A stretch of DNA of 64,000 nucleotides, from assembly GCA_965649765.1 (NCBI GenBank), contig OZ287750.1, forward strand, positions 54,746,001 to 54,810,000, in the 5' to 3' direction. Below the pieces are notes generated by a model that saw only the letters and a list, made by a program, of their open reading frames with translations, did not search any database and was not told where the DNA came from. Numbering within the stretch: position 1 is the stretch's first letter; the number at the start of each line of letters is the position of its first letter. Below, piece after piece: positions 4,411 through 38,830 of this stretch. A program made the position numbers and the translations under genes. The DNA is from Bispira polyomma. Taxonomy: Eukaryota.

Positions 4411-4727
4411 TAACACACCCCAACAGTAAATCAATCCATCAGCGAAAATATCCAACCAGTGTAAATAATTCTCAGTACCCCAAGTCAACAGAAACCCATT
4501 TAAAATGGCAAAGGACTCTGCCTAAACTCTTACAAATGTAAATGGGTGTATTGTACTGAACAATACCAGGTATTATCTGGGTAAATTGCAGACTGATAAG
4601 AAAAGGATCAGTTTTATGCTGTACACATCTTATATTATCAAATATGCACTAATGTTTCTGGGTCAGCGAGAAATCGTAAAGTCAAAGCTTTGCCTCAGTA
4701 GCAACTGAATTAACAGGGCACACTCAC

Positions 4728-4790
4728 TAGCCATTAATGGCTAAACGGAACTTATTGTTCTGAGTGGATACCTTGGTAATAACAGAACAG
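4728..4790. promoter_or_regulatory. Conserved upstream block with 16-bp palindrome TAGCCATTAATGGCTA (paralog 1)
   Basis: Block TAGCCATTAATGGCTAAACGGAACTTATTGTTCTGAGTGGATACCTTGG recurs at 11528, 36724 and 50953. Confidence 0.45.
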
Positions 4791-14479: not shown

Positions 14480-16260
14480 CTGGAGTTCGGTTTTTACTTT
14501 TGATGCTCTGGACAAGTCTATTTTAACTCAAAAACTCCACAACCATCCTTTAGCAGGTAGTTACCCTGCTCACATGCAACATTATATTTCCACTGAAACC
14601 AATTATGGGGCTATTGAAGCTTATGTAGAACCACCCTTCTCAGATTTACATATCTCCTATGCATACTCGGCATAAACCTCATTCTAACAACAGAAGAGTT
14701 ATTATAGCCTTGTCTTGTCTCAGAAATCACTTTGTTAATGTTAGTGTTTCTAAAGATGTTTTTATGCATGCAGACTTTGTAATTACATATACCACAGTGG
14801 ATCAAATGATAGATTGTATTAAGCAAAGTGGAACAGACTGTTACTTGTTTAAGGTGGATCTTCAGCACGCTTTTCTGGAGTTTGAGGGTGGACCCTCATG
14901 ATTATCACTTATTGGGTCTGTATTGGGATAATGAATACAAAGTTAATAAGGCGGTCCCCTTTGGTCTATAACATGGGAGCCATTATTGCCAGAGAATGAC
15001 TGACAGTATCATATATATCATGGCTCAGCCGGGTAATCACTTGTTTAGGTCTTTAAAAAGATGTCACTTCAGGTGCACTCAGTATGCCTTCTGATAAGTT
15101 ACAAGAATTTACTGAATTATGTGTTAATTGGAGTATAAAAGGTTTGCCTCTAAACGGCTAGTATATAGTATTGCTGGCAAGTTACTGTACGTCAGCAAAT
15201 GTGTCAGGCCAGCCAGACTGTTTGTCAATTGTATCTTGCAAGAACTGCGTACTTGTCCTTATACTGAAAGGTTTAAGTTATCAGTGCCATTTATTGTAGA
15301 CATAAAATGGTTAGTCCAATTTCTTAAACAGTTTAATGGTGTGGTTTTATATGATAAAACATTGTGAGGTAGTGCATGTTGATGCCAGTTAGACGGGCTT
15401 AGGGGCGGTTTACAAGAATTATGGTTATCATGTGGAATTAATTCAAGTATCTGAACCCCTTTTTCATGGAAGAAATGCTCAACGTTTTCACTTTGTATTT
15501 TGATAATATCATGGTAGTTAATGTTTTAAATTTTTTTGTTCTAAATTTTTCTAGAGGCAAGGACCCTTATTTATTTAAAACAGCTCGCCATATCGGGCTA
15601 CTTACTGTCTGGGGTGGATAACGTGGGGGCTGACCTCTTGTCTCGTTATTCTGATGTAGCTAAAAGTTGTGTACAGTGTGATGGTCTCCCCTTTGGTAGA
15701 GTATTTAAGGCAATGTTTTTAGTGGCTTTTTTTAGCCTATTTAGTATTAGTAATCATGTGCCCCATGCTGTGTATGTATGATTCCGACAGGCTGTTACTC
15801 TATAAATTTTTAATCTTCTGGTTTAGTCATCAATGTTAAACTAGTGTATGTTTGCAGTTACCTCAGCTTGTGGGTTCACCTTTGAGTCCAGTTTAAGCAA
15901 CGATGGACATCTTTGGAGATTATCCAGCTACTCTAGCTTCCCCCTTGTTTATATTGACAAGTTATCTGGCGTTACAAAATTTTAACAGATGTTAAGGTTT
16001 ATTATGTGCTCAAAGACATTCTTGCCGTACTCGGCCTCAGGACTAGAACTCTTGGGTTCCATACATTCAGACGGTCAGGAGCTTCACACCTGTTTTAACA
16101 TAATGTGCCTTTTCAATGCCTTTACACTCATGGCACATGGACTTTTGATGCCATGGAGTCATAACTGCAGGCTGGTGATAACCTCAATATTATCCCTTAA
16201 ACTTTTCAATTCATTCTTTCTTAAAACAACAAGAACAACAACAGACTGGGGTGGTTAGTA
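14480..16260 (+). mobile_element. Heavily degraded YR (DIRS/Ngaro-type) retrotransposon: RT, RNase H and recombinase remnants
   Basis: Fragments PMHTRHKPHSNNRRVI, LFKVDLQHAF, AGKLLYVSKCVRPARLFVN, VHVDAS, FLVAFFSLFSISNHVP, HTFRRSGAS and HGTW are colinear with the element at 19817-26660. The insertion may span 13190-16419. Confidence 0.8.
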
Positions 16261-17778: not shown

Positions 17779-17854
17779 CTTTAAGTTTTTGTATGTGATG
17801 TGCTAGTTGTGTTTAGGCAACTTTGCTATTTGTCAATAAGTTATGTTTGGTCAT

Positions 17855-17955
17855 GGTACCTAATCGCTTAGCAGTGAAGGTCCCCAGCTGCAGAGCTTTA
17901 AACCCCGGTAGCTCACACCAGGAGGTAGTTTCAAGCTGGGGACCAGCACTAGACG
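17855..17955 (-). ncRNA. Candidate structured RNA motif, copy E3
   Basis: Minus strand CGTCTAGTGCTGGTCCCCAGCTTGAAACTACC...GAGCT...AGCTCTGCAGCTGGGGACCTTCACTGCTAAGCGATTAGGTACC. Perfect 11-bp helix plus CTAA-GCGA-TTAG hairpin. Confidence 0.6.
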
Positions 17956-19740
17956 GTTCGAATCTGTTGGTGGGGACATGCGAGATACATGTAAAAACAA
18001 GTTCATCAATCATAGTAAATAAATTTTTGACTTGTCTCGTTGCTTTCAGAGTTTATAATGCTAGCATAAAGGGAAAGGCGGGAATTCGCCCAGGAATCGA
18101 AGTATTTGATTGGTCTTGATTTGCCATTTGATTGGCTTTTGGTTGGTATACAAATAATTTTACTGTAAGCATTTTTGTGAAATAGTTGATCAGTAAACTT
18201 AAATTTGCTTAAGCTGTACGTATAGATTTTTAGAAAGTAGAAATATAGATATAAAGTAAATTTGTCAAATTGAATGCAGATACTAAGATGTAAGACAATT
18301 TAAATAAGGCATAAATTGTATGTTTCACATATATTTTCACTGAATATAAGAACCATCTCTTTGCCACCTTTATCATTGATTACCTCATCCTGTAGAAATC
18401 CTCATCCTGCATGTATTTCTCATACATCATAGAAAGTTGAAAAGTTACCATAGTTTATGATACTGAAGTGGAACTATCTTGGTTAGCACCTTTATTTATT
18501 GTTGATAAAGTACATTTAACCTGTTTGTTGATGACAAAATATAATTGACTCTGCAAAAGGACAAATACGTGTTATTGGATAACACAATACAAAAAAAAGA
18601 AAGATTTGTTCTATGCAATATTGAACACCTAATGCATCATTGATCTATCCTTTTGTTTTGGGCAAATATACAAAATGGTAACTCACACTTGCATTTTTTA
18701 ATTTCCCCTTAATGCCTTTCATTATGAGCAAACTAACACAAAATCAACAAATAATACAAAATGTTTCTTTGCAGAAATCATGCAGCTAACCAGTGCATTG
18801 GTAAACAGCAAATTCAATATTTTCATTGTAATTTCAAACTACATTGACTTCAAGCAAAATCCATTGCATTGGTAGATTTCTATTTAAAAATATTCAGTGA
18901 TGTGTAAACAGTGGCTTGTTTTGTCAAAATGCATGTATCTAGAGACACCTACAAAACTCTATTATCTCAATGGCTTTCCTCAAAATTAACATCGATTTGT
19001 TGTAATAGAGCATTGCAGTCATTGACAGCATATTAGGTACACAGCACGGTGCCTGGGTCTGGTCCTCGAAAGCACTATATTGCATAATCCAACTGACACA
19101 AGGTCCACTGGTCATGTTGACTGTTTCTGTAAAACATTCATACAGGGGAACAGAAAAGTAATACCAAGGTGTTCTATTTTGTAAATATTGTCCTATTTAA
19201 TACAGAAACACTATTATAGCTAATGTGAATAGCATCTTCATGAATATGTCACCCAATGCATGACTTTCACTCCCAAGTCACGTCCTGGACTTCTACCAAG
19301 CCAGAATCAACCCTGACCCTTTCTGAGACAAGAATGACAGGTTTCTTTTTGTCTTCGTTGCGATGTCTGCTAGCTAGTTTGTTGAAATTTTATACAATCA
19401 TAGCCTGACACACCAGTAATACTTACCATGATTCATGGACCTGACCTCTGCTTGACCTTTAGTAGGGAGTTCCCTTCTTTGATTTGTCTCTGCACTTAGC
19501 TCGAGATACATTGGGTAGCCCATCTAGTTGCTGGTATCCCCCTTTCTAACTCAACAGGCATGCTCCTCACTATCACTTTTGTGATGTGAGCCTTTATACT
19601 TATATATACATCTTGTTTACATTGCATCTGCTTTTTACTAATCATATTCTTATGGGCGAGTCTTGTATTAATATTACAAGCACGTATACATTAGGACCTG
19701 AAGGAGTTTCATAAAGAAATTCTAATTTTATTGAGAGACA

Positions 19741-19816
19741 TACACTACTAAAACCAGTGCAATGGTAATACCAAGCATTTAATAGTTAATTTCTATGCTG
19801 ATGATACAAAACTTTA
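19741..19816 (+). mobile_element. 5' piece of a truncated L2 LINE, split by the Ngaro insertion
   Basis: Encodes VNFYADDTKLY(V) and rejoins in frame with 26661 (HLLNRITTSAF...). Compare FHFYADDTQLYVHLSHKNTSTAF in the L2 at 60470-61411. Confidence 0.8.
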
Positions 19817-20032
19817 TGTGTATAGCACGAACACAAAAGGGTTCTGATAATTCAGTTCAATAGTTAGCTTTTCCTTAACCCCCAGGGAATGAACCTGACA
19901 CTAAAACTTCAGGAGCATTTACTAATCAATAACCAATCACATTCATTCCACCAATTGCTAGAGCACAATTCCCAATTGGGGGGGTAATTCATATTGAAAC
20001 CACATCACATGAAGGAACACAATAGAAAAGTG
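19817..20032 (+). repeat. Ngaro repeat A1 (216 bp)
   Basis: Direct repeat of 25604-25819; about 9 differences by manual count. Confidence 0.93.
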
Positions 20033-20096
20033 TGGCAAAATCAAGCTTTTAGGTAGCCATTTTACACTGGATTTTACATTTTTAGTCTTTATTTAT

Positions 20097-21381
20097 TTGT
20101 GTGTTATATTTTTTAATTGTGCAACAACAAGTGTCAATACTACGGGACGTTCAAGAAAAACACCATCTGCAGGATCAAAGCCAGCTAAGGCCAAGAAAAC
20201 CATAACCAAGGCAAAAAAGACTACAATTCAGGATCAGGTAAATGGGAGTTTTATATCCGATTTACCCTTCCCCTTTGGTCAAACAACACCTCAGAATAGA
20301 TCAAGTTCAGCCGGATCTGAGTTTAACCAGTATGCAGGCTCCAATCCCATTCACACGGATGTCGGGCAGATCCACGCTAATCAACCACTCGTGTCACTTG
20401 CTACTACTACAAGCGAGCCGGCAGGTGATACAGTACAAATGCTGGAAATCTTGAAGAGATTGGAGCAGTCCAACGCGGACTTAGGCCAGGGCCTCCACTG
20501 GGTGGAATCCCGAGAGTCTCAGAATTCCACGCCCTTACTTCCATCAGTACCAAACACCGGGGCCACGGGGGGTCACATCCCACGTACTCAGCCATTACAT
20601 ACAGTACAGGACTCGCTAGCTCTCCCAAGGGCCACCAACATTCACGACTATGCCAGAGACGGAATCGTCCCAGGGGTGGATGCGCTTAAGGCACTTCCAG
20701 ATGTACAAGCCATTGTAAATCAACGGATCTCGAAGTATGAAGCTCTTGCTCGCAGCATCTTCCACCAAGGTAAGCCCCCCCCCCCCCACTACTCATCAAA
20801 AGTCGGGCCGTTTTAACTATACATATATTGCATCATCAGACCCTAAGCTTCGTTGGCCTAATGAGGGTTTCACAAGGGGGGCTTCCAGAAAGAGGCCAGG
20901 TTTTGACGACCTAACTTTACCACAGTGGGTGGCAGGGCATCTTTCCAACGCTATGCAGGTTTCGGATCCACTAATATTCAGAGAAATGGTACACCAGCTA
21001 GTGCTTTCACTTCGCGACGCTTTATCATTACCATGGGAAGTGGTAAGGTCGGCATAGGGCCAGAACATGCATGAAGTAGAAGAGGGTCGTCTCAGGTGGG
21101 ACAACACCATGCAATATTCGCTGAATCGGCTTAGTTCGTCCCAGATGGCTATGGCGACTTCTAACACATCAGGCAAGCATAACCCAACAAACGGTAAATC
21201 CTCGAAAATGATTTGTAAACTCTTCAGCAGCGGCAAGTGCGCGCATAATTCTGACCACGGCACATACTGGCATGTGTGTTGGCACTGTGCCACGGTACTA
21301 CATAAAGACAACCAACATCCAGAATTTAAGTGCTATCGTTCCAATTCGTCCAAACAAACTGACAGTAGGGACTCCACATAA
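20097..21381 (+). pseudogene. Ngaro gag-like ORF (frameshift in a poly-C run near 20775, in-frame TAG at 21055)
   Basis: KSGR...WPNE...FDDLTLPQWVAG...EVEEGRLRWD and a C-terminal C-x7-C-x5-H...C-x2-C-x9-H-x4-C Zn finger. Homologous to 29163-30611. Confidence 0.8.
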
Positions 21382-21424
21382 CAGCTAGGTAATTTACCGA
21401 CAACCAGTAGATCAGCACAGGGAC

Positions 21425-23935
21425 GTGTATAAGTTGAGCGGAAAGGTGGTAAATAATAAAGATCTGAGAATTAGGAACAGAAATCATGAGTTTAAATTGT
21501 CTAGTCATATTTCGGGAAGTCAGACAGATGTGAACAGTGTTAATGCTACAAATTGGTGTCAAAATGTTGATACTGGAGAAAGTACAAAAGATGTAATTAA
21601 AGTGGTCAATGGTCAATCAGACCAAATAAATGACACATTATTTAAAGGTAGTGATAAAAATAGAAATAGAACAGTAAATAAGTATTTAAAAGAACTGAAT
21701 ACTATTTGTCATGTAAATGTTAAATCTAGTGCTGGGATGAGAAAAATACCAAATGTAAACACGAGTGTTGTTAATGTACTGAATAATGTGAATTTGTGTA
21801 ATGCAAATGTTAAATCTAGTGTTGGGATGAGGAAAATACCAAATGGTAACACAAGTGTTAATAATGTATTGAATGATGTGAAATTAAATATTTCATGTGC
21901 AGACCCAGTAGTGTTTACATTTATTAAGCATGACTCTAAGACCAGTTTTCAGGAAGAACAACATAGCTGTGACAACAGATGTGTCAACATATTTCAGGAT
22001 TTAATGTACACTAACCAAACTAACAGTGGAATAAATCATAATGTAAACGACCAAAGTACAGGTTTTAAGGCTTGTGTAGATACAAATATTGATCAGAAAC
22101 AATCGGATTTTAGTGTCATGGTGGTCACTGCCAAGGTTTCTATGACTAACTGGTGGCACTGTCAGGGGATGGGGAAATATTTTCCAATAATACATGTGGG
22201 AACAGATAATGCTGAAATTTCGGGATTCTTTTGGCAACAACCAAGTGAAGATCAGGTGCATTATAATTACATAAAATACCAGGATTTGCCACATATTCCA
22301 CTTCACATTTCTTACACCACGGAACAAGACTTGGCAGTGTACAACCAAATTCAGCATCATGATCAGGAGGCCATGACCTTGGCTAAGCAAACTTTTTTAC
22401 TTCATGAAAAAGACAGACAATGCATGTCTCAATTTGGCTATGATTATAGTGATCATATCACTGCTATTATTGACAAGTTGATAAGTGATGATGCTGATAC
22501 TTTGGCACAAGATGACAGTAATACTGTGGTAAATGGTCATAATACTAACACTATTAACACCAATGTTCATTGTAATGTAGCACAGAATGCTAGAACCATG
22601 TTGTCCGGTTTCTCCGAACATATTTCTGAAATTTCTCCAGTCAGCAAAAATTGTAAGGACAGTAAGGCTAAGGATTTCAATCTCCCTGATAAGGACAGGA
22701 GATTTATTGCTCTTTCGGCTACAGATTTCACTTTTTATGGCCTAGATAGGGATTTTAAAACATTTGACAATATTAATGCGTTTATTGAAGTAGCAAACAT
22801 TATTAACGACACAGGCTCTTCCAATTACAAAGGGGCTCGGATTCCTTTGCTCTCTGACTTAAATATCGAGGCTTGGGAAAAATTGCTCAGCGAGTATCCT
22901 GATAAGTTACTTTTTCAGTATCTCAAATTTGGATTCCCACTTTCCCTTACTGATTCTGATCAACTTAAAATTACTGAAGTTACTAACCACCATTCGGCTC
23001 TTCAGCATATGGATGCAGTTGGCCAATACCTGGAAAAAGAATATTCACACGGTGCCATGTTAGGTCCAGTTAATCACGTTGACAGTGATTTATATCACTG
23101 TTCTCCCCTTCTCACACGTCCTAAAGATAACAATAAGCATAGGGTGATTCTGAACTTGTCACACCCTCAGGTTAACTCGGTCAATGACAAGGTAGACAGG
23201 GACTGTTTTGACGGGGTCAGATTTGCTCTTAAGTTCCCATCTATCGACGATATTACAGCAAAAATCAGAGACACCCCTGACGCTAGGATATATAAACTGG
23301 ACGTCGATAGGGCCTTTCGTAACTTAAGAGTGGACCCAGTCGACGCCATGAAACTAGGCATAAAAGTTAAGGGTAACAACTACATTGATCCTGCGGTTGC
23401 TTTTGGCTGGGTCCACGGCTCGGCGGCGTTCCAGCATCTCTCTGACATCATAGCGCATGAAATGGGTAGGCGTGGTCACCAGGTGTTCTGTTACATCGAT
23501 GACTACATTGGTATATCCCCCAGGAACGATCCAGATAGGGCTTTTCATGATTTTACTGATCTGGTGACCTCATTAGGTCTTCCTAGCAATCAGGACAAGT
23601 TATCTCCCCCTAGTACTAAAGTAACGTGTTTAGGCATTGATATTGACTTGAATAAGGGCGTTATCAGCATAACTAAAGAAAAAATAAAGGAAACCTATGA
23701 CGCTTGTTTAGAAATAAGTAACAAAACCTGGATCTCACGAAAAAAATTTCAATCTATTCTAGGTAAGCTTCTCTACATACATAAGTGCGTGAAACCTGCA
23801 CGCATTTTTGTCAATAGACTTCTTGCAGCTTTTAGGAATAATCCACTGGCAAAAAGATTTAAGGTTACTGAAGAGATTAAGGCAGATTTGCAATGGTTTG
23901 TCATTTTCTTACCAACTGTTAACGGGGTTACATAG
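21425..23935 (+). CDS. Ngaro reverse transcriptase ORF with long low-complexity N-terminal extension
   Basis: LKFGFPL, SPLLTRPK...RVILNLS, YKLDVDRAFRNL, AFGW, CYIDD, CLGIDID, LGKLLYIHKCV. Truncated by a frameshift before RNase H. Confidence 0.88.
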   Translation: MYKLSGKVVNNKDLRIRNRNHEFKLSSHISGSQTDVNSVNATNWCQNVDTGESTKDVIKVVNGQSDQINDTLFKGSDKNRNRTVNKYLKELNTICHVNVKSSAGMRKIPNVNTSVVNVLNNVNLCNANVKSSVGMRKIPNGNTSVNNVLNDVKLNISCADPVVFTFIKHDSKTSFQEEQHSCDNRCVNIFQDLMYTNQTNSGINHNVNDQSTGFKACVDTNIDQKQSDFSVMVVTAKVSMTNWWHCQGMGKYFPIIHVGTDNAEISGFFWQQPSEDQVHYNYIKYQDLPHIPLHISYTTEQDLAVYNQIQHHDQEAMTLAKQTFLLHEKDRQCMSQFGYDYSDHITAIIDKLISDDADTLAQDDSNTVVNGHNTNTINTNVHCNVAQNARTMLSGFSEHISEISPVSKNCKDSKAKDFNLPDKDRRFIALSATDFTFYGLDRDFKTFDNINAFIEVANIINDTGSSNYKGARIPLLSDLNIEAWEKLLSEYPDKLLFQYLKFGFPLSLTDSDQLKITEVTNHHSALQHMDAVGQYLEKEYSHGAMLGPVNHVDSDLYHCSPLLTRPKDNNKHRVILNLSHPQVNSVNDKVDRDCFDGVRFALKFPSIDDITAKIRDTPDARIYKLDVDRAFRNLRVDPVDAMKLGIKVKGNNYIDPAVAFGWVHGSAAFQHLSDIIAHEMGRRGHQVFCYIDDYIGISPRNDPDRAFHDFTDLVTSLGLPSNQDKLSPPSTKVTCLGIDIDLNKGVISITKEKIKETYDACLEISNKTWISRKKFQSILGKLLYIHKCVKPARIFVNRLLAAFRNNPLAKRFKVTEEIKADLQWFVIFLPTVNGVT
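21703..21884 (+). repeat. 90-bp (30-aa) tandem duplication inside the RT ORF extension
   Basis: CHVNVKSSAGMRKIPNVNTSVVNVLNNVNL / CNANVKSSVGMRKIPNGNTSVNNVLNDVKL. Confidence 0.85.
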
Positions 23936-23939
23936 AACC

Positions 23940-24454
23940 ACTAGAACAAACCCAAGGAAATGAAGTGTTCATAGATGTTTGCCTTACTGGTTTAGGCGGC
24001 ATTTATGGCAAACAAGTATATGCTGTCCCCTTTCATAATATATAAACTTAATCTCACAATAGTTCACTTGGAGATGTTGAACATCCTGATTGCTCTCAGA
24101 TTATGGGCAATCGAATGGGCACACTCTAGAATAAAAATTTACTGTGACAATATGGCAGTAGTGCTGGTTGTCGGTTCTAGTAAGACTAAGGATAAATTTC
24201 TCGCTCTATGCCTCAGGTACATATGGCTGTTGTCAGCCAAATATGATATCACACTGGAGGTCCAACACATTAGGGGCAAAAAGAACGTCATGGCAGACTA
24301 CCTTTCTAGAATATATTCAGAAAATCCAATAACTGTGGACATTAACAATGATGACTATAAACACCTCATCTGGAATCATATTCCACTAGCTTATTTTAAT
24401 ATAAATTTTACACTATACTTTCAGATGCTTTCACTGTTACACAGCCACTTATGA
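23940..24454 (+). pseudogene. Ngaro RNase H domain (frameshifted)
   Basis: VFIDVCLTGLGG / IVHLEMLN / IYCDN / HIRGKKNVMADYLSR provide the D-E-D-D catalytic set across two frames. Confidence 0.85.
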
Positions 24455-25398
24455 CTTCAGCATGGGACAGACTTAACACTGTTCTTCGCCCAAATACTGC
24501 ATCAGCATACAGTAATCAGTTTAAGACATTTTTAGCTTTCAATTGCTTTGCTAGGATTCAAGCAGTTGACAAACAGTCATTCCTTGCTTTCCTAGAATAT
24601 TTGGTACAAAATTCCCTTTCTCCCAAGGCTATTGCAAACTATCTTTCTGCTATTAAATTTATGGCTAGGAAATTTCATTGGGATTTGGCTATATTTGAAA
24701 ACAACACGGTTGCTTTATTTATGAGAAGTTTGTCCCATAATTCACATTTCAGACCTCAGCCTAAAGGTATATTTAACATTAAACATATGGCTCTTATCTT
24801 GCAGGGTTGCGACATACTTTCTGATCCTGTGCTATATAAGGCCATTCTCCTTGCTTTTTACGGGTTTCTTCGCATATCCAACATTGCTCCACACTCTAGG
24901 GCTACTTTTGACCCCTCCAGACATTTCTTAAGAAAGGATGTCATATTTGGCCATCCAGGGGCCCACATTATTCTGAAGTGGGCCAAAAACTTACAGGATA
25001 GGTCCCAGTCACATGTAATTCAAATCCCCACGGTTAAGAACACCATTCTTTGCCCTGTGAGGGCCCTACATAGATTACTCTCATCTAGACACCTTCCTGA
25101 CTCTGCACCTTTGTTTGCAGAATCTCACCATCCAAACTTCTCAGTGATAGACACTCATGTACGTTCTGCACTCACTTCTGTGTTGACACATATAGGCATT
25201 CCACACAAATCACACACATTCCACACATTCAGAAGGTCAGGTGCCACATATGCCTTTAACAATAACGTTTCTTTGCAAAATATCATGTCTCATGGGCTGT
25301 GGAGGTCATCAGCAGCTTGGACCTATCTTCAGAAAACACCACAAGCAGCCTCCACAGTCCCCCTTACCTTTGCCTCCTCTATTCCCCTAAATTTTTGA
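24451..25398 (+). CDS. Tyrosine recombinase (315 aa, intact)
   Basis: Catalytic residues R (FLRISN), K (KWAK), HxxR (HTFRR), H/W (HGLW), Y (WTYL). Confidence 0.93.
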   Translation: MTSAWDRLNTVLRPNTASAYSNQFKTFLAFNCFARIQAVDKQSFLAFLEYLVQNSLSPKAIANYLSAIKFMARKFHWDLAIFENNTVALFMRSLSHNSHFRPQPKGIFNIKHMALILQGCDILSDPVLYKAILLAFYGFLRISNIAPHSRATFDPSRHFLRKDVIFGHPGAHIILKWAKNLQDRSQSHVIQIPTVKNTILCPVRALHRLLSSRHLPDSAPLFAESHHPNFSVIDTHVRSALTSVLTHIGIPHKSHTFHTFRRSGATYAFNNNVSLQNIMSHGLWRSSAAWTYLQKTPQAASTVPLTFASSIPLNF

Positions 25399-25410
25399 CT
25401 TTGGGTTTGC

Positions 25411-25606
25411 GTGTTTTTAAAATCTGAATATTTTAAAATCCTATTATACTACATTTATTGATAACATTATATATTTTACTAATATGTACAGTAATAAAAC
25501 CTCAAACCTAGTTTTATTCCCTTGTTCACACTTGCAAACTTCATTCAACTATGTAGTGCTACAACTTAACTTTGGCCTTGACCTTAATACTTCACTAGTG
25601 AACTGT
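25411..25606 (+). repeat. Ngaro repeat B1
   Basis: Near-identical direct repeat of 26465-26660; overlaps A2 by TGT; contains AATAAA. Confidence 0.93.
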
Positions 25607-25819
25607 GTATAGCACGAACATATAAGGGTTCTGATAATTCAGTTCAATAGTTAGCTTATACCTTAACCCCTAGGGAATGAACCTGACACTAAATCTTCAG
25701 GAGCATTTACTAATCAATAACCAATCACATTCATTCCACCAATTGCTAGAGCACAATTCCCAATTGGGGGGTCATTCATATTGAGACCACATCACATGAA
25801 GGAACACAATAGAAAAGTG
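25604..25819 (+). repeat. Ngaro repeat A2
   Basis: Direct repeat of 19817-20032. Confidence 0.93.
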
Positions 25820-25911
25820 CCCACCGCCACCCCGTCTTCCACCAAAATATCCCTCATTAACAATAAGGTTTTCTTAAGGCACTTGATTAGGAACAACTCT
25901 GTTGTTTTGTT

Positions 25912-26068
25912 AGCAGCAATGTGGACTCGTGACCGTGTGGAGGTACGGTTCCCCCTTGGTAACTACCCCTTGTGTGGGCTCCAGGGAGGATTATTAGCTC
26001 TGCAGGGGTTAACCTTCCTCTACTAGGCGACTAGGTGCCACAGGTCACGAGCCCCCTACATTGCTGCT
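25912..26068 (+). ncRNA. Candidate structured RNA motif, copy E1 (core 25934-26039), in the A2-B2 spacer
   Basis: Outer helices AGCAGCAATGT/ACATTGCTGCT and CTCGTGACC/GGTCACGAG; inner helices TGGAGG/CCTCTA, GGTTCCCCCTTG/CAGGGGTTAACC and GGGCT/AGCTC; hairpin CTAG-GCGA-CTAG. Confidence 0.65.
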
Positions 26069-26464
26069 TAGGCATTGAAACATAGCACACATTTTTAAGT
26101 ATATTTATTTTATCATACTTTAGTCTAGCATAAAGGCTTAGGATAAGTTGACAGAGTACTTGCTGACAGGTACCCATGTAGGGCAATGGTTTGCTGCTAG
26201 TTGTATTTGCACATTATATATCTAGGGCAGACTTAAAAGGATTACTGCAGTATGTCCGTTAGATAGTCCCATTTTCATATGTAATAATTATATGTTTTAC
26301 ATTGTTGCCTCCTGCGTGGGGTTTCTCTATATTTATTATTAATATGGTAATAACCAGTAACGTATGGTCAGTGATGAATTATTGGTTTATACACTGTGGA
26401 AGGAACTAGACTTGTTTGATTACATCTTGTGATATTTCTCTTTTATTTTCTGTACTTTGTACGG

Positions 26465-26660
26465 GTGTTTTTAAAATCTGGATATTTTAAAATCCTATTA
26501 TACTACATTTATTGATAACATTATATATTTTACTAATATGTACAGTAATAAAACCTCAAACCTAGTTTTATTCCCTTGTTCACACTTGCAAACTTCATTC
26601 AACTATGTAGCTCTACAACTTAACTTTGGCCTTGACCTTAATACTTCACCAGTAAACTGT
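26465..26660 (+). repeat. Ngaro repeat B2 (right end)
   Basis: Direct repeat of 25411-25606, ending in AACTGT. Confidence 0.93.
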
Positions 26661-27545
26661 TCATTTATTGAACAGAATTACAACTTCTGCATTTAGTAGC
26701 CTTAAAAGCTGCTTTGACAATGTGCAAAAGAGGATGTTTAATCATAAGTTAAAAATCAACCTGGATAAAACAGAATTCATTCTTTTTGGATCCAAATCAC
26801 AACGCAAGATTTTGGCTGATAATTTCCCAGTCAATATTCTGGGAAACATGTTGCACCCTGCTGATACTGCCAGAAACCTGGGTGTCACATTTGACTCTGA
26901 TTTCTCATTTGCTAAACTAGTTCAATCTGTTTGTAGGGCTTGTTTTATCCAGATTTGAGACAAGTGAGACTATACCTGTCTAGTGGAACTATGATGGCAA
27001 ATGCCCTGGTCAGCAGTCACCTTGATTACGGCAACTCTGTTTTCAGAGATCTCGCTGGGACTGCCCTGTGCAAATTGCAACACAGTTTGGCTCAGATTAT
27101 AACACGGAAGTCCAAGTTTACTCACATTACTGCTGTTTTAAAATCCTCCACTCGCTGCCTATTGAGTATAGAGCAATATTCAAAACTGCTACCTAAGTCT
27201 ATAAATATCTCAATTTAGGTTTCCCTCTGTATTTCAGTCCTTGCTTATCTCTCTATACATGTCAACGCAATACAAAGTGTAGTAGGCCTGGAAATGCTTT
27301 CTTAAGTGTCCCTCCTTTGTTCAATCAGTTCACAAGTCAAAAAGACATTTTAACAATAGTTTCTCATTTGATGCTCCTAACCTGTGAAATGATCTGCCTC
27401 ATGATACACTACCTCCTCACTTTCCTATTTTAGGAAAAAACTCAGAACCTACTTATTCAGCAAGGCTTTTTCTACTTAGCCTCCTTAAGTTTTGATGGCG
27501 TCTCCATGATCATGACCCCTATACGTCCAATGGCTATATGTAATT
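26661..27545 (+). mobile_element. 3' part of the L2 LINE interrupted by Ngaro
   Basis: KLKINLDKTEFILFGS...RNLGVTFDSDFSF, ANALVSSHLDYGNS, FSFDAPNL; 3' UTR like 1-350. Confidence 0.85.
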
Positions 27546-28495
27546 GTCTAAGGATTTTCTTTGTCTGTTTAGATATATTATTTTGTGGTATTTGTATTAT
27601 TATTGTTCTATTGTAATTTTGTATTGTGCCTTTGTATTGTCTTATAGTATTATTTTGTAGTTACTGTGTATATTTGCTATAAAGTAACAAATAAAAACAA
27701 AATATTTTGCACTATATCATTGTAAATTTTAAAATCTTTACATGGTATCAAATATCTACAGTAAATATATTGACATGTACAGAGTTAAAATAAATTTTTC
27801 AAACATATATTTCCTTGTCTTTGAAGGTCATCACCTTCACCTCTCATTGGGAACTCATAGACACATTTTAATGCAGTCCACTCAAGTTCATAATGAATTG
27901 TAAGATAATAAGCAATGCAAGTCAATAAAAGATGCAGTTTGAGGTTTTAGTTATGTTTTACATATTAGTAATTTGTACAGGTTGACAAAGTGTTAAAATA
28001 ATGGTTGAATACTTGTAATAAGATTTTAAGCCCCACATGGGAATCATACAACAAATGGGTGAAAGCCGAACAAGAAAACAAGGACTAGCCATTAATAATG
28101 GAATACCACACAAACATAAAATAATTACATAAAATATATCGTATTTTGTTTTAGCTAGTTTGGACTAGCCAACCGTTTGTAAAGTATATGAATATGTGTT
28201 ATCCATAAGCTAGTTACATAAACAAAAAAAAATAAATGAACTGATATCATGATTAAAACAGTATACAATAGTGGAAATACAGGTTCTTTCTATCAGAGTG
28301 TACACTAGCCATAAATAGTGTTTTCTGCACATGATGATTTGTTTTTCAATCTAGCCAGATAGGCCTTGCAACTGGTGTCACACACATGAACAAATTTGTT
28401 TCTATAACACTTCACATGTGTAGCTTTTACATCAAATATACCCAGTAATTGATTGCATTTTATGTGCTGCTCTGGGATGGGAGCCTAACACCTGG

Positions 28496-28609
28496 GGCAC
28501 CTAATCACCTAGCAGAGGATTCTGATTCTTTCCAGCACTCTTTTTTTCGGCCCTGCTATACTCTAAACGTGAGCTCAGAGGGAGTACAGGAGACACAACT
28601 CTCCACACA
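28496..28609 (-). ncRNA. Candidate structured RNA motif, copy E4 (degraded), probably in another YR 3' fragment
   Basis: Minus strand TGTGTGGAG...ACTCCCTCTGAGCTC...CCTCTGCTAGGTGATTAGGTGCC; CTAG-GTGA-TTAG GNRA hairpin; flanking helix AGCCCAGACATT/GGTGTTAGGCT. Confidence 0.5.
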
Positions 28610-29162
28610 ATGTCTGGGCTACGATTGCACACAGCAAGCTTTAGTTACACAAGAGTGTTTCTTTCTAACCAATTTTTTTCAGAAAAATTAGCTAAGATGA
28701 CCCCTTAAAGAGGATAATTGTCTTACAAAACCCTCAATAAAACAACTTGTTCTATAGGAATTAGCAAGCTGTATCATAAATATACATTGAATGCGTGCGT
28801 TATGACCAGCATCAGGTGTCACTTTCCCCCAAGCCGTGTTCACTAAAAACCATTCATTAGATAAGCCATTGGCGCCAGAATTTCCCGCCAAAATTGTTTA
28901 CCTGCCCAAGAATAAACAGTGTTGTCCTCATTCTGGGAAAAACCTTGAAGGAACAACAACTAAAAAGGAACTACATTCCTTTTTGGGACGCCATCTTAAC
29001 TATTTAAACACACAAGGATATTTTAAACTATAATTTTAATAAAGGACGTTTACAAATATATTTACATAATATTTTAAAAAGAAAACGTTATATATTAGTG
29101 AGTGTTTTAGTCAAGTGGTGTTAAAGTTCTACTCTACCGTGTGCCTATATTGTGATTTGAAT

Positions 29163-30611
29163 ATGGGCCCGAAACCGGTGAATAAGCAACATAATACCAG
29201 GAGCAAGAGCAAGGAGCAGTGTTACAAGTGTAAATCCAGTCACCGTTTGCCTATGGGGGACCGCTGTTTGAGGGAAGGAGCTGCCGACCAGACGCTGACA
29301 TCCTCGGGTTCGGATAACCCAGACCAGTCTAACGCGTTGGAGCAGTCAAGCCAACAACAGGAGATGAGGGTGATACACAACTCCACCACTGAAGGTATGG
29401 ATCAGTCGCAAGGACAGGCAGCCAAGGGGAAGAGAAAACGAGTCGGCAGTGTAGATGTAATGGCCAAATTAGATAAGTTCATGGAAAAGTTCTCTCAGCT
29501 AGAAGAGCGAGTATCCAGACAGGAAGAACGACGGGACAGTGAGCTATCGCTCTCCACCAGGTCGTCGGCGCACAGCTCGCCAAAACGCAAGACCACTAGT
29601 GAACGTACTGAGGGACGAGGGCAGTCAGGGAAGACCACTAAGTTACCTTCACTGGACTGCCTTCGGGGAAATACTACAATTCAAGAGGAAGTTGACAGGC
29701 GGTTGAGACAATACCAGGACGGTTCCAGAGACGATCTGACAGGTATTTTTGTTAATAAGAAATCCCTTAAGTCAGGTAGATTGCGTGTTGGGGATCAGAA
29801 AGTAAAAGTTTCCGTACCGTGGCCTCATGAGCATTGCATGCTCAACGAGCATATGGAAATGCCTACGTATGAAGATTTGACATTATGTCAGTGGGTGCAG
29901 GGCTATGCCCGATGCGAGTTAGAAGAGTCAGACGAAGAAGTGCGCAAAAACATGCTGCATTATCAATATCTGTTAATGCAGGATGCCATAGACCTCTCTT
30001 GGGCGACAGCAAAACGAGCCCATGCGGCAGTGCTGACCGAGATAGAAAGGGGGAATGTCACTTGGGAGGATGTCGGTGAAATTGATCGAATTAGGCAACG
30101 TTTCACGCAGAGAACACTAAGGAGGGCCAGCTCGGCTAGTTACAATGGGTCTACTAAGCAACATGCTCAGAACGGTAAAGTAACTGTTTGTCAAAAATAT
30201 TCAAAAGGGACTTGCAAATTTGATGCAGACCATTTCGAGGGGGGTAAGATGCAAAAATATTCTTGTGGGTATTGTTACAGGACTGTTCATAAGAATTATG
30301 ACCACCCCGAGATTAAATGCAACCAGAAGGTAAAGGAAGGTGGGGCAAAAAGTCGTGAAGCGGGGACAAGGCTGATCAGCGAGTTTAATGTTGTAAGGGC
30401 CCCCTCCTACAATATCACCAGTAGCGGCTTACAAAATAATAAGTCCCAAATCAAAAAGAAAATTGTAACAAAAAATCATGTCTGGGGAAGCAAATTTTGG
30501 AGTAGTCAACATCTGGGTCTGTGTAATTGTCAGTGGTGTGCGAGAGACACCACTTATTATATACCAAAAGGGGTGAATACTGTGGGCAGGGGTTTAACCC
30601 CACTGCAGTAA
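29163..30611 (+). CDS. Ngaro gag-like protein (intact; likely start MGPKPV)
   Basis: N-terminal C-x2-C-x3-H-x7-C, coiled coil, KSGR...WPHE...YEDLTLCQWVQG...EIERGNVTWED, C-terminal CQKYSKGTCKFDADH...CGYC...HPEIKC Zn finger. Confidence 0.82.
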   Translation: MGPKPVNKQHNTRSKSKEQCYKCKSSHRLPMGDRCLREGAADQTLTSSGSDNPDQSNALEQSSQQQEMRVIHNSTTEGMDQSQGQAAKGKRKRVGSVDVMAKLDKFMEKFSQLEERVSRQEERRDSELSLSTRSSAHSSPKRKTTSERTEGRGQSGKTTKLPSLDCLRGNTTIQEEVDRRLRQYQDGSRDDLTGIFVNKKSLKSGRLRVGDQKVKVSVPWPHEHCMLNEHMEMPTYEDLTLCQWVQGYARCELEESDEEVRKNMLHYQYLLMQDAIDLSWATAKRAHAAVLTEIERGNVTWEDVGEIDRIRQRFTQRTLRRASSASYNGSTKQHAQNGKVTVCQKYSKGTCKFDADHFEGGKMQKYSCGYCYRTVHKNYDHPEIKCNQKVKEGGAKSREAGTRLISEFNVVRAPSYNITSSGLQNNKSQIKKKIVTKNHVWGSKFWSSQHLGLCNCQWCARDTTYYIPKGVNTVGRGLTPLQ

Positions 30612-31156
30612 TTAATGGGAAAAACTCAAACTCTTACGTCGCAGACGCGGCTGGCATGAATAGTAGCTATACTAGTGTAGTTTTCAATGTCAATACAGTG
30701 TTACTGGAAGATACAAATGTAAACAGCAGTAATTGTGGTTCTTCGTTGTATGAGTCCAGTGTAGTCAGTAAGGACAGTAGCAGTAGCTGGAGTAGTAGTG
30801 TTTCTAGATCACAGGATTCTTACGTAGTGAGTCAGAGTAGTATAAAAGATTATAGTTTTGCCAAGGCTTGGGTCAAGGACGACTTCAACCCAGGGTTAAG
30901 TAGCATAAGGGTCCATGATATAGGACATATAGAGAGCCTCATGTACAATGCAGACTCTGACATGTCGAGTGTAGACAGGAAAAGGGGTCAGGCCCAGATA
31001 GGTTTCACCAATAATGAATCAGTTGACGAGTCAGTTAATATTAGCATGGCCATTAAGCAGGGTCAGTTTGGTGTTAGCTTTAGAATTAACAATGTCAGGG
31101 ACACCTCAGTAACAGAACAATCTAGCCATTGTGTAAGGTTAGACGGGGGTCACTAA
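30527..31156 (+). pseudogene. Ser-rich N-terminal extension of pol, truncated at the deletion
   Basis: Overlaps the end of gag in another frame, low complexity like 21425-22650, and ends at the A2 junction. Confidence 0.5.
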
Positions 31157-31352
31157 AAACCACTCATTAGGTAAGCCATTGGCGCCAGAATTTCCCGCCA
31201 AAATTGTTTACCTGCCCAAGAATAAACAGTGTTGTCCTCATTCTGGGAAAAACCTTGAAGGAACAACAACTAAAAAGGCTCGCCCACCCACTTCCAGAAG
31301 TAAGAGTGTAACGAGCTCAATAAGGGCTATATGTGTTTATCAGTACAGTGCT

Positions 31353-31530
31353 GTTCCGAACTGGGATCTCCACGGCTGGGGCCTGGGCCTCGGGGCGTGT
31401 GGCGGCGGGTCCTGTCTCTCAACTTTCCCCTTAGCTGGTCAAATAGAAGCTCTGAGAGGCAGGACCTCCCTGCTACTAGGCGAATTGGTGCCGTAGACCC
31501 AGGATCCCGACCTCTGCTTGGGGGTTTGGG
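31353..31530 (+). ncRNA. Candidate structured RNA motif, copy E2 (core 31396-31492)
   Basis: GTGGCGG/CTGCTAC, GGTCCTGTCTCTCA/TGAGAGGCAGGACC, AACT, AGCT..AGCTCTG, CTAGGCGAATTGG, GTGCC; outer helices CCTGGG/CCCAGG and GGGATC/GATCCC. Confidence 0.62.
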
Positions 31531-33369
31531 TTCAGAGTAGAATTAATAAGTGTGCGATGTAAAACCGGTCTTTACGAGACCTGCTCCTGTGAGCCCTCAG
31601 CCTTTATCAAGGCTCAGTCTTGCATGACTGCTTACGTTTTTTGTATTTTCTTTTTGTTAGTGAGCTGTAAACACCACAGGTTTTAGGTTTTTAGTGTTCA
31701 TTTTATGTTTTAGCGTTAGTCCCAAAACAACTATAACTGAGCTTAGCACGTGGTTTCAGTACATACATATATATATAACTTAACACACAACAATACTGTA
31801 AATAATTTAAGTAGTAGAATAACTAACAAAAGTAGTAGGTAAACCTTAACGCTAGGGTCACCTAGAAACAACAACCGGGGTGAACTCAACTTAAGCTTAA
31901 GATAACCCTAAATTCTAGTGTAAGGTCACCTTAAATCCACAGTTAGTGGCTTTCCATAGGTAAACCTCAACTTAAGTTAAGGCCAACGTACATTAACAGT
32001 TAAGGTAACCATGAAGTCACAAGTAACAGCATAGGCTAGTGAAAACAGACGGTTAACCTCAACTCAAGTTAAGGCTAGCATAGGTTAGCAGGTAAAGGTC
32101 ACCTTAAAGTCAAAAGTTAAGGCCTTAGCCGCAGTTTAAGGTGACCTTATGTTTAGTACAGTAGTCTAACACATTTAGGTATATATGTATATTATATGTT
32201 ATGTATTTTAATAAAGCCCAAATGATGTAATGAATTCATTTACTCTGTGTTCCACTCTATTTTCATTTGGATCACCTTGATCACTATCAGCGCAGCTTGG
32301 GGAAAACTGATCCATAAATAGCTGGTTGCTACATGGACAGCCAAGCAGTATAGTTGCGGCTAGGGGGAGGTGGTGGGCTCTAAAATATTTCTTCACTGTG
32401 TCACCTTGATGTTTGTAGCTTGAATGACAAATTAAATATGGAATCTAAGAGAATAGAAGCCTGAACAAAAGGTATGCAGTGCTGTGATTGGAAGGTACTA
32501 TAATGGACAGACATTCTAGCTACATGAAGCGATAGCATTGGTAAAGTTGAAGGTTGTACAGAATTTAAAAGTTTGTACAGAATTTCAAGGTGGGTGAACT
32601 AAACTATCAGTCCCCTGAAGGATCCTGCTGTGAATTTTCAGTATGGATAGAGGTATCAGAAAAACCTATTTCTATTTGTAACAATTCCAACAAAAGAAGA
32701 ATAGATTTACATGACTCATCATTGTTTCCCAAATACTCAATATCCATTGATTCATGGCTTTCGGGAAAAAATGTTTAGGATAAAACTAAACTTTGAAAAA
32801 TACAAAGATTATTAGGCTGAGGAGAGGGGCTCTAAAAGTAAACAGACTTACCATTTTGAAATCTGTTGTTAAACTGAAATGTATATTTTTCAGTTTTCTG
32901 TTTCACCTCAATGAAAACTATACAAGCTCAATTTTTTTTATATATAAAAATACTTTAATGATGTAACTAAATTTGCGAAGACCAAACAGGCAGCTATTAT
33001 AAGTGATACAGAAACTGTAGGTTTGAAAATGGTAGATAAACTGATAAAACTGTTGACAGACAATAACTATGTATAGAGAAAAATTAAGTGTACATGTATA
33101 CAGCAAGGAATCTTAACTACAATAATTTGTGCAAATTCTAAATACCTCATATGTAATATCTAGAAACAAAACAAGATTTTTTATCAAGCATTGTTAAAAA
33201 GCTGGTTGTCCCCTGATTGTAAACTCGACTGGTTTTAATATTAAGAGTAGTAGATATTTCGGTATATGCAAAAAGTATAGGATTTTTAAATAGCAAAACA
33301 ATATAATTGGGAAATTAACTTCCTGACCCAAAATGGAATAATGGATTCCATACAAAGTGAATGAAAGAA

Positions 33370-34427: not shown

Positions 34428-36260
34428 TTAACTGGCTTCTGGTGGCTGCAGACTTAGAAGTTGATTTCCACGGTTTCTCTTTGAGACCAGATAGACCCTT
34501 CCGTCATGACAGTCGTAAAGTTTGCTCCCAATCCACTTATAATACCATCCTAGGCACCAGCTAAACCGACCCTCTAATGTGGTGACCAGTGCAAGCCTAT
34601 TCAGTGTGAGAATGAGTTTCTGATGTTCTGCTATGTTTGATGCTGAATTAGCCATGACTGCAATTAGGAAATTGATCAACATGATGGCAACCAAAAATAT
34701 AAACACCACATGAAGAGAATACAGAATGCCTATATTTGTAATGTTGAAGGCAGTCAGATCCACCATGTTTAGCATGATACGGAAGATGGTATATGTGGTT
34801 TTGAAGACACTGCTAAAATCATCAATACATCCTTCATTGGAGTTGTGATACACAAATGTTTGAAACACATGGATGAATGGTAGGATAATGATAAAGTATA
34901 GTGTCATAAAGTGGCCCATATCTCTGACCATTCCTTGTATGCTCATGATAGAAGAACCAACCACTGGCAGGAGCTGAATGAAGTAAAATATTGACCAAAC
35001 ACACATAATGGGTATTACTACTTTGGTAATATCTATGACTAAAATGACAGCATCACTTGCACCATTGTTAGATCTTGTCATAAGTAAGGGAACACATATT
35101 AGAACAGAAGAATACATGAAACACTGACAAACTCTGTAAAACATGGTATTAATAATTAATTGCTTCTTTCCTAACAAGCATTTTACAGGTTTATCACAAC
35201 CTCTATATTTAAACCGGATGATGTCAACAATATCAAAGATCATGAGTGCAACAGCTGCAGCCACTAGTATAACAGTCAAGCTATACCTAAACTCCTTTGA
35301 TAGTATAAGTTCCAAGTCAGGGCATGTATACTCAGTCAGGTTGCCTTGGTAAAGGTTCTGCATATAACCTGTATCAATATCAAAGATGAAGAAGGCTATC
35401 ATAAAGCTGAGTCTGATGAGAAACCAAAAAGCAACAGGTAACCAGTTTTGTTTACTCTTGGCCGCTATCCAGACAGTAAATAAAGGTCCAAACACAATAC
35501 TGGCAACCATTTTATCTGTCAGCTTTTCCTTCTGTAAATATGCAATATACCGAAGAGGAGATTTATTTTTACGACTTCCTGTTTCATACTCAGTGATGTC
35601 ATGCCATTGGTAGACAATTATTCCTCGAATGTCTTCATGAGCTACATAGATGTCTTTAGTTTCGAATATAGCCTTGACCAGTTGCAGTGTTCCCTGTTGA
35701 GCTGCATACTCCAATGGCCTCAGGCCATCATCATTTTCACCTTCAAGTAACTCCACCATGTGCTCCTTAGCGGTCTGAGAAAGTAGCCACTGAAACATAG
35801 TGCACATTTTTTCTTCCAATGTGGGGTAATACGTAGACATAGAAACAAGACTGTGGAGAACATTATGATTGGTACTGTCTTTTGTCAAGATTTTAACTCC
35901 ATAGTTAATCATCACTTCTGCGGCATGCTTAGCTCCCGCACCAACAGCCAGATGGAACGGCAGTGACACTCTGTACCGATGCTTCCCAAATACACTAATA
36001 CAATAATCATCCTCAAAGTCAAAAGGGCAATTTAGTAAGACATTCAAGTCTGCAGCTTCCTTACAAGATTTCAGAGCATTATCTACTTCCTGTGCATTAT
36101 CAAATATGAGAGCATCAAAGTAGTCCTGGTACAGCTGTATTGGTATGCTTGAGTCCAGAGGTTTCTTTTCGTTGTCTTCAGATTGATGCAGTTCATCAGT
36201 GGCTGAAACACCCTCCAATTTACCAACTCTAAATGTAGCTGTAGAGGATACTTTTGCCAT
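34428..36260 (-). CDS. TRPV-like cation channel, paralog 3 (610 aa)
   Basis: Intact ORF colinear with the other paralogs. Confidence 0.92.
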   Translation of the reverse strand: MAKVSSTATFRVGKLEGVSATDELHQSEDNEKKPLDSSIPIQLYQDYFDALIFDNAQEVDNALKSCKEAADLNVLLNCPFDFEDDYCISVFGKHRYRVSLPFHLAVGAGAKHAAEVMINYGVKILTKDSTNHNVLHSLVSMSTYYPTLEEKMCTMFQWLLSQTAKEHMVELLEGENDDGLRPLEYAAQQGTLQLVKAIFETKDIYVAHEDIRGIIVYQWHDITEYETGSRKNKSPLRYIAYLQKEKLTDKMVASIVFGPLFTVWIAAKSKQNWLPVAFWFLIRLSFMIAFFIFDIDTGYMQNLYQGNLTEYTCPDLELILSKEFRYSLTVILVAAAVALMIFDIVDIIRFKYRGCDKPVKCLLGKKQLIINTMFYRVCQCFMYSSVLICVPLLMTRSNNGASDAVILVIDITKVVIPIMCVWSIFYFIQLLPVVGSSIMSIQGMVRDMGHFMTLYFIIILPFIHVFQTFVYHNSNEGCIDDFSSVFKTTYTIFRIMLNMVDLTAFNITNIGILYSLHVVFIFLVAIMLINFLIAVMANSASNIAEHQKLILTLNRLALVTTLEGRFSWCLGWYYKWIGSKLYDCHDGRVYLVSKRNRGNQLLSLQPPEAS

Positions 36261-38309: not shown

Positions 38310-38830
38310 ACTAGCTAATATCACTTTCCATACCTACCGGCGATCTGGGGCGACAATGGCCTTTAATGCCCATGTTCCCCTCCAAGACATTCAAAGTCAG
38401 GGCATTTGGTCCTCTGAGTGTGTGTGGAGATATATCACACAGGACCACTCAGACTTTGATCAAGTAGCCCTACCTCTCCAATCTCTGCTCAACCCTATTC
38501 CTACTTCCTAGTTGGGCCTAGGTGGTTATTCTCTCTTTTACTATAATTTATATGCTATAATTTTACAATTTTCTTATCTATTTAAGGCCACCTTATACTC
38601 AAAAACATTACTTAACCTTCACTAGATATGTGTAAGGCTAAGGCCAGTATAAATCATGTAATTCGTTAAGGTTACCTTAAATTTTGCTAAACCTAAACTC
38701 CAATTTTAAAGTTATGTTAACCTTAAACTTAGTCGACGTTAAGTCACTCTTAAGGTGAACTTAGACTAAGTAAAACTTTTGGCTAAGGCGGCCTCATTTA
38801 TATTAACTAAATTTTAACCAGTTACATATA
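38310..38830 (+). mobile_element. YR retrotransposon 3' remnant (recombinase C-terminus plus downstream region)
   Basis: TFHTYRRSGATMAFNAHVPLQDIQSQGIWSSECVWRYI, homologous to 25200-25398, followed by an AAGGTNACCTT-rich tract. Confidence 0.8.

Follow-up and report, generated by a model that had tools for sequence, protein, structure and literature searches.

A strongly conserved folded RNA, predicted to form a long rod with a three-way junction, is carried in the last noncoding spacer of Ngaro-type tyrosine-recombinase retrotransposons of Bispira polyomma, and it matches no catalogued RNA. The element was examined in a window of 64,000 nucleotides (assembly GCA_965649765.1, contig OZ287750.1, positions 54,746,001–54,810,000 of the forward strand; coordinates below are those of the window), in which an initial annotation had proposed that four otherwise dissimilar stretches, here called E1–E4, share a covarying RNA structure of about 100 nt. 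That observation is confirmed, and the four stretches read as described. The accompanying interpretation, a cis-acting RNA for priming, self-cleavage or packaging, is only partly supported: a conserved, covarying and strand-specific structured element of Ngaro-type elements is established, whereas the analysis does not distinguish between the jobs that were offered for it.

Abundance of the shared motif

The four stretches share a 20-nt 3' motif, CTRCTARGYGAHTWGGTRCC, which hits exactly these four places in the window, with 0.02 hits expected by chance. In the whole 1.03-Gb assembly the motif hits 1114 times, against one hit for the reversed control, whereas 596 Gb of prokaryote genomes gave two hits and the viral contigs gave none, so that this is an abundant repeat-borne motif and not a chance resemblance.

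Predicted fold and covariation

A covariance model (R1) was built from 21 copies with a hand-set structure. Plain MAFFT alignment misaligned the long arm, so that RNAalifold alone saw only helix a and the small hairpin. The model recovered the four window copies at 57–114 bits and, in the genome, all 150 scored candidates out of roughly 58,000 first-look candidates matched. Over a sample of 80 fetched loci plus the window it aligned 88 copies, of which 78 are distinct, falling into 28 clusters at 80% identity, about 24 of them complete. The absence of significant covariation in a larger alignment had been named in advance as grounds for rejecting the structure; in this alignment 87.3% of cells form standard pairs, against 33–48% when the 3' partners are slid by 1–3 columns, 30 of 37 pairs show changes on both sides, and the covariation score is 0.345, against 0.06–0.13 when slid. 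No shuffle of 500 reaches the observed score, although shuffles ignore relatedness. As the alignment is fitted to the model, the count was repeated in a gapless register fixed only by the two conserved sequence anchors, in which helix a is 98.7% paired (63 unique copies) and the outer stem is 82.1% paired, against 20–76% when shifted (20–60% for the outer stem). Double changes are clear at several positions, for example TA 38/AT 22 in helix a and TA 35/AT 10/GC 7 in the outer stem.

The element is a rod of 140–180 nt. From 5' to 3' it consists of an outer stem of 12–25 bp, often longer; the junction strand GU; helix a, 6 bp, in which GUGGNN pairs with NNCURC and the second and third pairs are nearly always U·G and G·U; a small internal loop; helix b, 10–16 bp of freely changing sequence; a variable apex; the 3' strands of helices b and a; the junction strand UA; a small hairpin inside the 20-nt near-invariant motif; the junction strand NYA, with an invariant A; and the 3' strand of the outer stem. 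A second conserved block, resembling GAAUAGGAGCUCUG, lies in the apex of the long arm and starts 28–32 nt before the 3' motif in most families, within three mismatches in 11 of 23; this is the 'AGCT, CTG' of the initial annotation.

E1 (25912–26068, plus strand) is a complete rod, with a covariance-model hit at 25917–26063 (113.9 bits) and a fold closed by an extended outer stem in which 25912–25934 pairs with 26043–26068. Its junction GU lies at 25935–25936, helix a pairs 25937–25943 with 26017–26023, and the long arm (25947–26014) contains helix b (25947–25958 with 26003–26014) and the second conserved block (25989–26002). The 3' motif holding the small hairpin occupies 26020–26039 and is followed by the junction strand ACA (26040–26042). 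E2 (31379–31516, plus strand; 97.7 bits) is also a complete rod. E3 (17841–17965, minus strand) is a rod of the commonest family that lacks its 3' outer arm, scoring 71.9 bits with R1 and 90.4 bits with a second model, R2. E4 (28472–28626, minus strand; 57 bits) is a degraded rod that keeps helix a and the 3' motif, and its own fold is no better than shuffles (z = −0.06).

The proposed pairing and covariation of helices a and b hold. At the position of helix a for which three different pairs had been pointed out, the pairs are AU 12, UA 7 and CG 1, and all 11 pairs of helix b show changes on both sides, with 90.7% of cells paired. The outer helices, which had been regarded as unrelated, are one homologous outer stem that also covaries. 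Two further proposals do not hold. The claim that the CTAG-GNRA-YTAG hairpin covaries is weak, as its closing positions change on one side only (G–C to G–U) and show T·T or G·A mismatches in about a third of the families. A competing hairpin, GGYG/URCC with a six-base loop, fits at least as well, is chosen by RNAalifold and most single-sequence folds, and has one pair that switches between C–G and U–A (Fisher p = 0.0017 among 100 of the genomic motif instances, not corrected for relatedness); the two hairpins exclude each other, and the present data do not choose between them. The suggested loop pseudoknot is likewise unsupported: its partners form an ordinary nested hairpin in the energy minimum, and none of the analyses tests the pseudoknot itself.

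The strand had been argued from G–U pairs in general. At variable paired positions, however, G·U (65) and A·C (61) are equally frequent among family representatives, and the argument holds only for three invariant wobble pairs, namely the tandem pairs of helix a and a third G·U pair in the alternative small hairpin, which would be mismatches on the complement, A·C in the case of the tandem pairs. The sense assignment also rests on the model score for E3, 90 bits on the sense strand against 9 bits on the antisense strand, and on the recombinase gene, which lies on the same strand as the rod.

Genomic context

E1 lies in a textbook Ngaro element (element 1), with the split direct repeats in the order A1 (19817–20032), B1 (25411–25606), A2 (25604–25819) and B2 (26465–26660), all on the plus strand. 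A1 is supported by three direct repeats (D2, D4 and D5) with 25604–25819, 90–98% identical, and B2 is 97% identical to B1. Between A1 and B1 lie a gag-like frame (20097–20816) and, on one strand, a reverse transcriptase/RNase H frame (21425–23935) and a tyrosine recombinase frame (24451–25398). The recombinase frame carries Phage_int_SAM domains and has 263 homologues with E ≤ 1e-10. Pfam itself found nothing convincing in the reverse transcriptase frame, but this frame is 43% identical over 595 aa to a gene with RVT_1 and RVT_3 hits in a Ngaro element of another assembly, ERZ22147071 (locus L031); it also contains a tandem duplication of about 90 nt (87% identical) at 21707–21885. E2 lies in element 2, with A1 at 28840–28968 and A2 at 31150–31278. 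The reading of element 2 as a non-autonomous family was rejected, since it is a single internally deleted copy: full-length relatives of 28840–31600 (G000:C4:44291200–44297361) match up to the base before A2 and resume about 3.4 kb later, so that pol, recombinase and B1 are missing while gag, A2 and the rod remain. The core of the structure starts 115 nt (E1) and 118 nt (E2) after A2, as had been claimed.

The 15–32 kb part of the window is a nest of Ngaro insertions on both strands, in which elements 1 and 2 lie 1.9 kb and 0.2 kb upstream of older rods. Further fragments of Ngaro reverse transcriptase and recombinase genes at 15128–16206 and 38323–38442 (both plus strand) have no rod downstream. 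The nest sits between four uninterrupted minus-strand reading frames of about 603–616 aa (2441–4255, 9202–11052, 34428–36260 and 48507–50318); the two that were scanned carry ankyrin repeats, one with an additional weak polycystin-channel hit below the Pfam cutoff, which looks like a tandem family of TRP/PKD-like channel genes. A LINE-type element on the minus strand at 60470–62918, with an endonuclease frame (61494–62918) and a reverse transcriptase frame (60470–61411; RVT_1, E = 5e-27), is unrelated to the rods.

Association with tyrosine-recombinase elements and enrichment between A2 and B2 had been set out beforehand as checks on the proposal. Across the sampled loci the association with Ngaro elements is consistent. 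A recombinase frame lies upstream on the same strand in 41 of the 80 sampled loci (21 of 50 taken in genome order and 20 of 30 top model hits); it ends 320–716 nt before the rod, apart from four outliers at 30–226 nt, and is 35–96% identical to that of E1. In 39 loci B-type direct repeats flank the rod, which lies between B1/A2 and B2, with median distances of 290 nt from the end of B1 to the rod and 319 nt (range 31–643 nt) from the rod to B2. The first AATAAA or ATTAAA after the rod falls about 65–90 nt inside B2 in most of these loci (for example L003, L012 and L026). The rod is therefore probably inside the transcript, roughly 400 nt before its predicted end, and not at the 3' end as had been proposed. 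B1 carries the same poly(A) signal, so the elements must skip it once, which is the problem that retroviruses have with their two LTRs. Some Ngaro families carry two rods in one spacer: L019 at 1477–1627 and 1692–1840, with L021 the same (64 nt apart in both), and L015 at 1484–1615 and 2608–2767 (minus strand).

Conservation uncoupled from the proteins

Rods of different lineages are alignable, while the 150 nt on either side sit at the shuffled baseline of about 51%. Among 202 element pairs whose recombinases are under 50% identical, 97 have rods at least 85% identical. Rod similarity does not follow recombinase similarity: among sampled loci, L003 and L038 share 44% of recombinase residues but 91% of rod nucleotides, and L026 and L003 share 48% and 86%, whereas L026 and the E1-family copy L009 share 69% and 69%, and L004 and L026 share 71% and 65%. 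In a recombinase tree, the rod-bearing lineages of this genome interleave with lineages of other assemblies; the labelling needs three changes, although well-supported branches alone do not force more than one. From this it is inferred that the module is exchanged between Ngaro lineages by recombination, on top of selection on its fold.

Occurrence in other assemblies

The closest recombinase homologues found are 56–59% identical, and the two whose DNA was fetched (P0001 and P0111) come from ERZ22147071. Their elements lack the rod: there is no motif, and neither covariance model finds it in loci L031–L033, even with filters off. L031 carries in the same A2–B2 spacer a different 68-nt hairpin module in two copies (4525–4592 and 4694–4761), whose hairpin differs by compensating changes and is followed by a conserved tail; it may be an analogue of the rod.

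A metagenome scan for the 20-mer gave 27 contigs (loci L084–L110), of which about seven look like chance or bacterial hits. The others, from ERZ17400xx, OFEO01 (OFEO01008644.1) and JAAUYA01, carry the motif in short repeats of about 250 nt whose flanks differ from copy to copy. These repeats keep the 5' anchor, helix a and an outer stem, with a long arm of unrelated sequence, and no recombinase or reverse transcriptase lies on the contigs. Locus L100 has two units 285 nt apart, the second of which (1004–1168) folds into the same three-way junction with the U–A version of the small hairpin. Some of the repeats have A-box- and B-box-like sequences.

Comparison with known RNAs

A match to an existing Rfam family had been named as the result that would remove the novelty of the structure. 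No family matched at gathering thresholds over the whole window, and searches with 211-nt and 321-nt queries, covering E1 and a copy of the commonest family, returned only chance hits at E ≤ 10, including for the twister, twister-sister, pistol, hatchet, hairpin and hovlinc classes. The junction strands GU, UA and NYA are not the CUGANGA, GAAA and UH strands of the hammerhead core, and all supported helices are nested, unlike the nested double pseudoknot with a catalytic C of the HDV-like ribozymes. The hammerhead and HDV-like ribozymes of Penelope-like, R2 and related retrotransposons are nevertheless comparable in that a conserved core lies at a helical junction with covarying helices in a retrotransposon.

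tRNA models do not recognize the Ngaro rods: ARAGORN found no tRNA in 14 Ngaro loci at its default threshold and Rfam tRNA does not hit them. Relaxed ARAGORN runs gave scattered hits of no value, apart from a tRNA-Trp-like call over the L100 units, and Rfam tRNA reached only 19.2 bits (E = 0.08) in the metagenome repeat L096. The tRNA-like 'head' of L100 turned out to be one strand of the long arm. The outer stem of many families contains the perfect palindrome GGTTCGAACC on both arms (for example L012 1477–1618, minus strand, and window 17941–17965), which fits the Pol III B-box/tRNA T-arm consensus; E1 and E2 lack it, and by inspection there is no A-box at the proper distance upstream. A reading of the 3' arm as a primer-binding site complementary to a tRNA 3' end was rejected by inspection, because the T-loop-like part is in the sense and not the antisense orientation. 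The 3' strand of helix a resembles the 3' end of initiator tRNA, a likeness that was not tested and carries no weight here.

The 3' stem-loops of stringent-type LINEs shared with their SINEs, such as the eel UnaL2/UnaSINE1 pair, are likewise conserved folded RNAs in a noncoding retrotransposon tail; they are portable between lineages, as the rod appears to be, and carried by short noncoding repeats. The rod differs in not lying at the extreme 3' end of the RNA, in being a three-way junction of 140–180 nt rather than a short hairpin and in belonging to elements that use a tyrosine recombinase, and its binding to the enzyme has not been tested. Sharing between autonomous and short non-autonomous elements was observed only as far as the same junction in short repeats of other organisms' contigs, whose partner elements and hosts are unknown, and this leaves the parallel undecided. 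The constitutive transport element of Mason–Pfizer monkey virus is also a rod of about 160 nt between the last gene and the terminal repeat, with conserved unpaired blocks. There is no sequence likeness to it; two GAWUAGG-like blocks occur in the rod, one in the apex and one in the 3' motif, but they are not loops in twofold symmetry and export-receptor binding was not assayed, so that the comparison does not settle in either direction. The internal complementary region of DIRS-1, which is required for mobility (PMC7192593), is a noncoding cis element after the genes of a tyrosine-recombinase retrotransposon, but it is defined by complementarity to the element's ends and not by its own fold; no inverted repeat of 25 nt or more was found anywhere in 18500–27500, nor any long complementarity between the rod and the A/B repeats. 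HBV epsilon, retron msr and the tRNA-like 3' end of the Mauriceville retroplasmid are folded RNAs that reverse transcriptases bind in order to start DNA synthesis, and the rod may work like these, although there is no sequence or model match and priming from the rod has not been shown. Among the papers that could be searched, none links Ngaro with a ribozyme or describes a conserved fold in Ngaro spacers, and text searches for pieces of the motif found only unrelated primers.

Possible function

The analysis demonstrates the structure, its strand, its position, its abundance and the mismatch between rod and protein similarity, whereas the binding partner and the step that the rod serves are inferences. 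Our preferred explanation, held tentatively, is that the rod is a structured module of the genomic (sense) RNA and a cis-acting recognition site through which this RNA is picked by the copying machinery of the element, that is, by reverse transcriptase or the particle, which could serve to start cDNA synthesis or to package the RNA. The fold is under selection, the module appears portable, and the short repeats that keep the junction and little else are what non-autonomous riders on a copying signal would look like, as SINEs carry LINE tails. No RNA data were examined, and there is no binding or mobility evidence of any kind. Several findings weigh against this explanation: the rod is not at the 3' end of the RNA, unlike the stem-loops that LINE enzymes recognize; a 20-nt motif kept unchanged across elements whose proteins are 35–45% identical fits a shared host partner or catalytic chemistry at least as well as an element-encoded protein; and, since the Ngaro elements of ERZ22147071, with a recombinase 56% identical to that of E1, lack the module, it is not a general requirement of the class.

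A less likely but possible alternative is that the rod binds a host factor and controls RNA handling, either by exporting the unspliced, intron-containing element RNA in the manner of the constitutive transport element of simian type D retroviruses or by favouring use of the poly(A) signal in B2 over the identical one in B1. The place and size of the rod are those of a transport element, the two GAWUAGG-like blocks are similar, and some element must distinguish B1 from B2. In addition, the motif is unchanged across very diverged element families of one genome while related Ngaro elements of another assembly lack it, and thus follows the host rather than the element. Splicing of these elements has not been shown, however, the range of distances to B2 is loose for a poly(A) enhancer, there is no likeness to known transport elements and no Rfam hit, and short intron-less repeats in other organisms also keep the rod.

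It is unlikely that the rod is a captured small-RNA or SINE-like, tRNA-related module that rides along, kept by frequent recombination and without an essential job. The B-box-like palindrome, the occurrence of the same 20-mer followed by a T-arm-like sequence in tRNA-like short repeats, the weak tRNA hit in L096 and the uncoupling from protein similarity would be compatible with this view, and the tRNA-like traits are recorded as a lead only. Against it, about 24 families keep the pairing through compensatory changes around a near-invariant junction, which requires selection on the fold.

A new class of self-cleaving ribozyme that trims the element RNA is very unlikely. The most conserved nucleotides do sit at a junction of three covarying helices, as in hammerheads, tandem G·U pairs are a classic metal-binding motif, and other retrotransposons carry hammerhead or HDV-like ribozymes. 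Nevertheless, nothing supports self-cleavage, which was not assayed: the junction strands fit no known ribozyme core, cutting about 400 nt before the poly(A) site would remove B2, which the accepted replication scheme needs, and genomic copies are not truncated at any common point. A role as folded single-stranded DNA or as a double-stranded recombinase site during integration is the weakest possibility, since, although DIRS-1 makes single-stranded cDNA (PMC7192593) and the small palindromic CTAG-N4-CTAG of some copies resembles a recombinase core site, the first cDNA strand is the complement, on which the invariant wobble pairs become mismatches and the model scores 9 rather than 90 bits, the palindrome is imperfect in most families, the helices covary with unrelated sequences as a protein-read DNA site would not allow, and recombination should occur at the B/A ends and not in the spacer.

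How DIRS/Ngaro-type retrotransposons start reverse transcription is an acknowledged open question, and the primer of DIRS-type elements is stated to be unknown (PMC7192593). An unlikely but not excluded reading is that the three-way junction is where the reverse transcriptase docks to begin cDNA synthesis, the missing 'primer site' of the whole class, and that short noncoding repeats in other organisms have captured this portable module, which would make them the first SINE-like parasites of recombinase-type retrotransposons.

In conclusion, this study defines an RNA of about 150 nt with a near-invariant junction, more than a thousand natural copies and about two dozen natural compensatory variants, which is amenable to binding, probing, cleavage and end-mapping experiments. 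It would add a new RNA family to the catalogues, and the 3' modules of these elements seem to be exchanged between lineages, as LINE tails are.
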